NCBI GenBank assembly: GCA_033442325.1
Contig: JAWQFM010000005.1
Span: forward strand, 2,273,772-2,337,771
Direction: 5' to 3'
DNA length: 64,000 nucleotides
Source of the DNA: Salpingoeca rosetta
Lineage: Eukaryota > Protista > Choanoflagellata
Positions 2,126-5,100 of this stretch are shown here, in pieces. The notes beneath the pieces were generated by a model. The model searched no databases. It worked only from the letters and a program-made list of their open reading frames with translations, and was not told the DNA's origin. The stretch's first letter is position 1. Every line of letters starts with the position of its first letter. The translations under genes and the position numbers were made by a program.

Positions 2126-5100
2126 ATGGAGCGAGCGTCAAGGCTGCTGCAGCACATCGCCAGTGCGTTGCGCTTGTGTGTGTGTGTGTGTGTGTGTGTG
2201 TGTGTGTGTGTGTGTGTGTGTGTGTGTGTTGTTGTTGTTGTTGTTGGTGCTTTGTATGAGGCTGTGTGCGCTTGTGTGTGTGTGTGTTGGTGTGTGTGTG
2301 TGCATGTGCATGTGCTTGTGTGTGTGTGCATCTTCCTCTCTCCTTCTTCCCTCCAGCTCACGGCTCATGCACACACGCACACGCATGCACATCGCAGCTG
2401 GTGCTGCATTGAACCGCCAGGATGAGGATGTGGTCATTTTGGGGTGCAAGCGCACGCCAATCTGCAAAGCAAAGCGCGGCGGCTTCCGCGACACCCCAGC
2501 AGGCGACCTCCTTGAAGCAGGTCTAGCGCTAGCCCACATGTGTGTTTGCGTTTGTGTGTGTTTGTGTGTGTTTGTGTGTGTGTGTGTGTGCGTTTGTGTG
2601 TGTTTGTTTGTTTGTGTTGTGTGTGTGTGTGCGTGTGTGTGCGTGCGTGTACAAGCGTGAACACCGTAGATTCTGCCAGACGCGCTCATCACTGCCTCTC
2701 GCTCGATCTCGTATCTGGACACCATGCAGTGCTGAGATCGGTGGTGGAGGAAGCAGGCATCGCATCGGAAGAAGTGGAAGACGTTGTCGTCGGTAATGTC
2801 CTCGCAGATCAGGTGTGCACACAACTCAACCGCATGCTGTGACCACACACATTGCCAAAACTGACCCTTTATCCCACCATGTCCTGGTATGTGTATGCGC
2901 TCTTACTCATGGGCGTTTGAGTACCTGCCTGCCATTGTGAATGTGTGTGTCTGTGTGTGTATGTGTGTGTACGCACGCAGGGCATCTTGATGGCCCGCAC
3001 TGCGCAGTTGCTGGCAGACATCCCGCACACTGTGCCGACCGTTACCCTCAACAGACAATGCGCCTCCGGCCTTCAGGTGCTGCTTGGTTTAGTGTCGTGC
3101 TGGTCTTAGTACATGTTCAGCGCACTGGTTGCTATTCACACATCGCCAATCCCCATCATTTCCACTCCCCCCCCCACACGCACACTCACTCACTCACTGT
3201 GCCGCATGCTCCTGTGGGGATTGTCGTGACCAGGCGATTATGACTGTCGCAGGAGAGATTCGCACGGGCACCATTGATCTCGGCATCGGCGCAGGCGTCG
3301 AGTCAATGTCTGAGCGATCAATGGATCAAATCAGGCCAAAGGTGTGTGTGCTTGTGTGTGTGTGTGTGTGCATGTTTGTGTTGTGTGTGTGTGTTTGTGT
3401 GTGTGCTTGTGTGTGTGCTTGTGTGTGTGTGTGCATGTTTGTGTTGTTTGTGTGTGTGTGTGTGTGTGTGCGTGTGTGTGTGTGTGTGTGTGTGTGTGTG
3501 TGTGTGTATGTGTGTGTATAGGCGAACCTCGACTTGCGAGCCGTCGAGGATCGATTAAAAGGATCTCGCCCGGTCTCGCAGACAAATCATCGGCCTCGGG
3601 TTCCGGAAAGAGGCTTCGACGCAAGCTTACGTATCTCCTGTTAGATCCGCGAGGAAATAACGTCCAAGGTACGCTGAATGCGGTAGAAGAATGAATACCG
3701 AGATTTCTACGCTACTTCACCAATAAGCCTTGCTCATGATTGAGGCGCGGGTGGGTTAAAATGCTTGGGGCCACAGTGACAGCGCTCAACAACTCAGTGA
3801 CTGCAGATAACAGGGTCATCCACGTTGCGAGATACAGCTCGTGTGTGTGTGTCGTGTCGTGTGTGTGTGTGTGTGTGTGTGTGTGTGTGTGTGTATGTGT
3901 GTGTGTGTGCTTCAATGAATGTGCTTTTGCACGTGTATGTGCCTGGGTTGCATCTCTTTCACGCTGCATTCCATCGCCACCTCATCACACGCCACCACCG
4001 TCGTCATCAGGCGGGCTGCAAAGGCCCAAGCCAGCAACGGATTCGTACGAGAAATCGTTCCGACGCTCTCGCGCGTGAAGGTGTGTGTTTGTGTGTGTGA
4101 ATGTGTGGTGTGATGTGTGTGTGTGTGTCCATGTATGCGTTTGTGTTGTTGTGCATGCACTAACGTGCGTGTGTGCGCCTGTGTGTGTGCGTGTGTGCCA
4201 CACCGCAACAGTCGCATACCGCGACTGTCCAATCGCATCTGTGCTGCCTCTTGATCGCCCTGTGTATGTGCTTGCCCCGCTCAGCGTCCGGCATATTTCT
4301 CGTTTATGATGGTCGTGTGCAGGGCGAGGATGGGGAGCTGGTGCCGGGGCCCGTGGTGGTCGAGGACGATGGCATCCGTCCCCAGACAACAGCAGAGGTG
4401 ACTGCAGCATGCGTGATGGAGGATGTGAGGTGTGTGTGTGTGTGTGTGTGTGTGTGTGTGTGTGTGTGTGTGTGTGTGTGTGTGTGTGTGTGTGTACGCG
4501 CGCGCGCGCGTGAGAGAGAGAGAGAGAGAGAGTGTGTGTGTGTGTGAGTGTGTGTGTGTGTGAGTGTGTTTTTGTGAGCGGACCGTTTTGCACGTGTGCT
4601 CTGAACCCTTCCCTCACAGCCAAATTCATGTGTCCGTATCAACGCTGTGCTGTTAACAGAAACTGGGCAAACTGAGACCCGCGTTTAAGCCCGACGGCAG
4701 CACAACAGCAGGTGATGAAAGCATTCATGTCGATAAATACGGCTGCGTTATCATGTGCGCATGCGCGCGTTTTCGTGTGTGATGAAGAAGGCTGATTCTC
4801 TGTGCATCCTCCGTTGCGTTGCTTGCAGGCAACAGTAGTCAAGTGAGCGATGGTGCAGCGGCGGTACTGCTTGCGTCACGGCGGAAAGCGCGCGAACTCG
4901 GGCTCCAGCCACGAGCACGCATCGTTGCATCGGCGGTGCGTATGTGTGTGTGTGTGTGTGTGTGCGTAATGCTTTATGTGTGCACGTATTGATTCATGTG
5001 TGTGCCCTCGTCTCCGCCAACGGGTCCGTGCCCGTCTTCATGCCTCTTTCTTTGCAAGGCTGTCCATTTGGTTGTTTTACCCACAAAACATGCCTTTCCC

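Follow-up and report, generated by a model that had tools for sequence, protein, structure and literature searches.

How does a gene that is perfect in its other parts come to hold a few hundred bases of random-looking sequence in place of a conserved piece of one exon? The question was raised by a peroxisomal-type 3-ketoacyl-CoA thiolase gene ('Acaa1a protein', P0269) of Salpingoeca rosetta, located on the plus strand at 2126..5824 of the window (the whole stretch of 64,000 nt of DNA that was analysed; positions without a prefix refer to it). The 12 exons were placed at 2126-2162, 2398-2520, 2730-2812, 2981-3076 and 3234-3341 (exons 1-5), 3522-(3551), 4011-4080, 4323-4397 and 4660-4711 (exons 6-9), and 4829-4935, 5128-5256 and 5609-5821 (exons 10-12), with the stop codon at 5822-5824. 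Exon translations were 100% identical to the 405-aa P0269 ('Acaa1a protein [Salpingoeca rosetta]') of NCBI, UniProt and EukProt, and approximately 76% identical to P0212, a thiolase of 411 aa that is probably of choanoflagellate origin, judging by the naming style of the EukProt transcriptome that contains it.

Thiolase_N (PF00108) matched the exons in a six-frame search, and both PF00108 and PF02803 are recorded for P0269. As in peroxisomal 3-ketoacyl-CoA thiolases of the ACAA1 and yeast POT1 type, N- and C-terminal thiolase domains are present, and the NRQC nucleophile motif (exon 4) and the GHPLGCTG motif (exon 12) are common to both; NRQCASG and NEAFASQ were also located in the gene. By alignment the N-terminus was similar to those of P0212 and P0268; it resembles the N-termini of PTS2-bearing relatives and may include a PTS2 nonapeptide. 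An initial annotation of this DNA had described the remaining exons and the catalytic residues as intact, and the splice sites, phases and motifs were indeed all perfect, which makes the gene unlike an old pseudogene. At the start of most introns between 2163 and 5608 the coding strand shows an extended, imperfect run of (GT)n, accompanied in places by (GA)n, (GC)n and (GTT)n.

The exception is exon 6. Its genuine 5' part (3522..3551, plus strand) follows a normal acceptor (tatAG at 3520-3521), as had been claimed, and encodes ten native residues that align in register with LNPRLFSNED of P0212 (4/10 identical) and with LNPRMFGNED of P0268. After 3551 the frame changes abruptly to RLKGSRPV... 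and meets a TAG stop at 3642-3644. By direct reading, (GT)n sequence is rejoined at 3841, where the native remainder of intron 6 begins (3841..4010, plus strand; composition native again), and both reading and translation place the start of exon 7 at 4011, in phase 2, with RAAKAQ. The alignment of P0212 across the site runs ..MDQIQPQ|LNPRLFSNED|AVNCLIPMGVTSENVAERYTITRQQQDAFAAESHR|RAAKAQ.., and relatives have AVNCLIPMGVTSENVAERYTITRQQQDAFAAESH between the start of exon 6 and RAAKAQ. Relative to P0212, 34 codons and 2 nt (104 nt) are missing, a number that is consistent with the exon phases and agrees with the loss of about 35 conserved residues reported at first reading.

The place that belongs to the final 104 nt of exon 6 and the first part of intron 6 is taken by a block of 289 nt (3552..3840). 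This had been called a replacement rather than a simple insertion, and the description holds, since 104 nt of exon and some intron sequence are lost and 289 unrelated bases are found instead. Neither a target-site duplication nor a terminal inverted repeat was found at 3552-3840, again in line with the first reading. The left junction of the block coincides with the end of an 11-nt inverted repeat at 3523-3533 / 3543-3553 (CGAACCTCGAC / GTCGAGGATCG, 91% complementary), which may be chance or may form a hairpin at which sequencing reads stopped.

The missing residues belong to the loop domain, whose CL(I/L)PMGxTSE.VA segment was present in P0212, P0268, P0036 and P0008 and was not found at the S. 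rosetta locus or elsewhere in the assembly. Searches with P0212 and P0269 using tblastn gave no trace of it in 2000-6000, in keeping with the claim that no local frame encodes it. A six-frame search of the 68 contigs with the missing thiolase peptide, which the initial annotation had proposed, returned paralogue exons only, at 55% and 48% identity. Thus the gene as assembled differs from ACAA1/POT1-type thiolases in lacking ..NCLIPMGxTSENVAERxxISRxxQDxFAxxSH.., which every relative has kept.

The block was composed of A79 G76 C72 T62, near 25% of each base, with no microsatellite, as had been observed earlier. Its TA observed/expected ratio was 0.83, compared with 0.35 in the window. Markov models (orders 2-5) that had been trained on the window gave the block -2.11 to -2.22 bits per base; every tested native window of 289 nt scored above it (native minimum -2.03), and its distance from uniform random sequence was less than 1 sd. 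When the 64 kb was scored in windows of 150 nt, each of the seven lowest overlapped the block, which makes it the most atypical place there, and its composition was the least native in the 170 kb examined. In composition the block is indistinguishable from uniform random sequence. Stops were present in all six frames (1-7 in each), and their total of 28 compares with 27 expected by chance.

The same block was found base-for-base in the public assembly GCA_000188695.1 (GL832957.1, at about 2,273,136-2,273,424), from which DNA was fetched independently. Comparison of the public locus with the window and the stretch to its left showed no difference in 23,699 nt, the offset being 4,187 throughout. 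The analysed scaffold (2,372,476 nt) is 16,672 nt longer than GL832957.1 (2,355,804 nt) and identical to it within the 23.7 kb compared; the difference in length could arise from other gap lengths or from added stretches.

Public annotation crosses the block by means of a pseudo-exon (3522..3639, plus strand; one frame off, 38 residues). The donor of exon 5 is shifted from 3341 to 3345 in that model and a GT at 3640 is used, and an open frame is thereby kept. Residues 150-190 of P0269 match the frame-2 translation of 3524-3640, and the protein includes about 40 residues translated from the block. The annotated model comprises 1215 nt (405 aa), and the natural structure would be about 1227 nt (409 aa). 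A transcript-derived thiolase of S. rosetta was sought by a profile search and with P0212; the genome-derived P0269 was the only one returned.

Three preselected suspect places and eight neighbouring stretches (approximately 66 kb), all on the same scaffold, were scanned using Markov models. A random-like block was detected at each of the three suspect places (3/3), and no such block was detected in the approximately 66 kb of neighbouring sequence. The first, of about 376 nt (L003:3910-4285; contig 5 about 2349909-2350284), has (AC)n(GAC)n on one side and, on the other, the interior of an exon for a GH20 hexosaminidase. On visual reading, this exon stops after ..ADIKELLEYY on the minus strand, presumably just before the region expected to carry the catalytic motif. 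Its architecture is the same as that of the thiolase block. The second, of about 576 nt (L004:3190-3765; contig 5 about 840189-840764), is flanked left and right by the (AC)n tract in which it is embedded. The third, of about 510 nt (L005:836-1345; contig 5 about 2088835-2089344), is inside a long GC-rich exon, whose open frame on the minus strand was regained on removal of 491+3k nt; because of this, the third block may have been inserted, with no sequence replaced, between contigs that abut. These sister blocks were seen in the analysed copy of the scaffold, and identity with the public record covers the thiolase block only; exact look-ups of ten ORFs, used to place the sister blocks in the public record, were all absent.

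When the four blocks were pooled (1751 nt), they fitted independent bases of equal frequency (mononucleotides, p=0.60; dinucleotides, p=0.30; trinucleotides, p=0.56), and the lengths of homopolymer runs were geometric with parameter 1/4. As a rough estimate, natural DNA of 1751 nt should usually fail such tests of independence. Sequence of another kind was present at L006:461-800 (contig 5 about 2098460-2098799), where a homopolymer-rich tail of low-quality appearance runs from a (GT)n tract to a gap of 100 N. This tail is classic contig-end junk, of a kind other than the uniform blocks, and it shows that the assembly retains junk at contig ends.

The thiolase block is very probably filler introduced in assembly for a gap that had not been sequenced, and the thiolase gene is then intact in the organism; we infer that the block is absent from the reads. 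It resembles assembly gap filler in being unique, non-native and composed of uniform independent bases. It is also situated where contigs tend to break, by long microsatellites and in mid-exon, with true sequence of comparable length missing, and like blocks appear to recur across one assembly in which junk elsewhere abuts an N gap (L006). Among the origins offered by the initial annotation, only that of an assembly artefact was supported; that of a foreign cassette or nested element was not, the block being single copy, interrupted by stops and without relatives in the collections searched. An engineered origin, also offered, is unlikely, as the block was already present in the public assembly from an unengineered culture (2013 genome paper).

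The following sequence of events would account for the locus. The hybrid 454/Sanger assembly of 2009-2011 would have placed filler where usable sequence was lacking. The left contig would have ended 30 nt into exon 6, shortly after the (GT)n tract of 175 nt in intron 5. From an anchor in exon 5, a 454 read with a length of about 400 nt would cross that tract and reach its end near 3551. The right contig would have started in the (GT)n of intron 6, so that the remainder of exon 6, together with the first part of intron 6, fell into the gap between the two, and this gap would have become 289 arbitrary bases and not N. This could have happened by either of two routes. A scaffold gap of estimated size may have been turned random on passing through a 2-bit format unable to store N, which we take to be the Broad 'fastb' format; alternatively, the untrimmed noise tail of a read may have been used in manual gap closing. 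The near-perfect independent-base statistics favour the 2-bit format. Unlike classic low-quality tails such as that of L006, which are rich in homopolymers, the block has no homopolymer richness, and computer-generated bases are for this reason favoured. Gene prediction would then have spanned the filler with the frame-shifted pseudo-exon, which passed to NCBI, UniProt and EukProt.

The 2013 genome paper describes a 454/Sanger hybrid assembly with manual gap closing, and Levin et al. (PMC4381721) reported Illumina coverage below 10x for approximately 7% of the reference, and misassembly of some regions. A search of the literature for an account of the conversion of N to random bases in HybridAssemble found none. 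In the organism's own DNA runs (five studies), the share of the 2100-5830 31-mers that were present did not exceed 0.84, and words touching the block make up 0.086 of these 31-mers. Absence of the block words from these runs fits the 0.84 share, which could also come from microsatellite errors alone.

The alternative that survives best is a real lesion in the sequenced culture, in which repair of a double-strand break in exon 6 deleted 104 nt or more and captured 289 nt of unrelated filler DNA. The peroxisomal thiolase gene would then be a unitary pseudogene of recent date, whose loss other thiolases would make tolerable, and further thiolase genes were indeed located on contigs C6, C19, C34 and C2. 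Presence of the block in the public assembly and two clean junctions are compatible with such an event, and the undecayed state of the rest of the gene fits a very recent one. DNA captured at a repaired double-strand break, whether NUMT-like or foreign, likewise combines a deletion with an unrelated insert, clean junctions and no target-site duplication. Such DNA, however, has a recognisable donor and natural composition, whereas the block has random statistics and no donor in the genome, bacteria, plasmids, phages or metagenomes searched. A genome search with 3552-3840, proposed in the initial annotation, found the block in single copy. Using blastn, no credible match was obtained against plasmids, phages and 5,426 E. 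coli genomes, and the searches for a source were otherwise blank apart from two short matches at chance level (E 0.3 and 0.9). Exact patterns from the block were absent from JGI metagenome contigs, GTDB contigs and IMG/VR, and four 20-mers of the block had no match in full-text papers.

Prey bacteria or a cloning host were considered as donor and rejected, E. coli being without a match; the GC content of the Bacteroidota prey is, we assume, much below that of the block. Like blocks are moreover found in other conserved genes of the scaffold, and serial independent lesions in a healthy culture are implausible. A real lesion is accordingly improbable, although it is better placed than the readings that follow, which together with any others carry at most a slight probability.

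It is very unlikely, in a more general form, that the block and its like are truly present in S. rosetta chromosomes as unique, composition-neutral and untemplated-looking sequences that overwrite pieces of exons and microsatellites. If they were, an unknown process of DNA synthesis or repair, or an unknown source of donor DNA, would be implied.

Still less probable is a foreign or mobile functional element, that is, a nested cassette, a structured RNA or an antisense micro-ORF. The last of these was suggested by the minus strand at 3712-3819, where LLSAVT is encoded twice, seven residues apart and with different codons; repeats of this type occurred in 3/2000 random 289-mers, or approximately 0.15% (a chance of about 0.0015 per random 289-mer). 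Given the number of blocks and patterns examined, an event of about 1 in 700 is nevertheless expected by chance, and the double LLSAVT was judged to be such an event. The longest frame of the block had no relative of 31-98 aa among 5.8 billion proteins, a search that is weak as it had no positive control. A mobile element was rejected: the block is unique in the genome, is bounded neither by terminal repeats nor by a target-site duplication, and contains no transposase or reverse-transcriptase ORF. Transposons and intron-borne elements have in common with the block that a few hundred bp interrupt a gene beside an intron, but the block shows none of these hallmarks of theirs and does not code for protein, and it replaces sequence and does not add to it. 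A structured non-coding RNA was likewise rejected, since a search of Rfam gave no credible match and the block folded no better than shuffled controls (z +0.73 and +1.55). Stops in all six frames also stand against a functional element.

Six metatranscriptome runs may contain a piece of about the size of the block, which would favour such an element. Each of these unrelated runs contained 0.07 of the 31-mers of 2100-5830, a share that equals the words internal to the block (259/3701) and also the words of near-perfect simple repeats (7.6% of positions), so that either the block or near-perfect microsatellite words could explain it. If it is the block that they contain, then the block exists as an actual molecule.

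Supply of the missing exon piece from elsewhere by trans-splicing or rearrangement, with the block spliced out, had also been offered and is scarcely credible: all eleven remaining exons are undamaged and keep their phase, but the 34 codons have no copy in the 68 contigs beyond the paralogue exons mentioned above, and no splice signals that rejoin the frame surround the block except those of the annotators' frame-shifted model.

With the block read as assembly filler, there is most likely no biological novelty here, the thiolase gene being intact. Experimental work on how animals originated has its main model in S. rosetta, for which GCA_000188695.1 continues to serve as the reference genome. 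If gaps in that assembly are occupied by random filler, public proteins such as 'Acaa1a protein' contain invented residues and lack conserved segments, comparisons of gene content and domain loss against animals may mislead, and guide, primer and mapping designs will fail over such places. The practical value of the locus is that of a data-quality warning, and a genome-wide list of such blocks would be a useful erratum.

Runs of N were also found. Those in the window, at 21314-21413 (100 bases) and 43247-43669 (423 bases), look like the scaffold gaps of a Sanger-era assembly, and a run of 4,785 N was found in L014.
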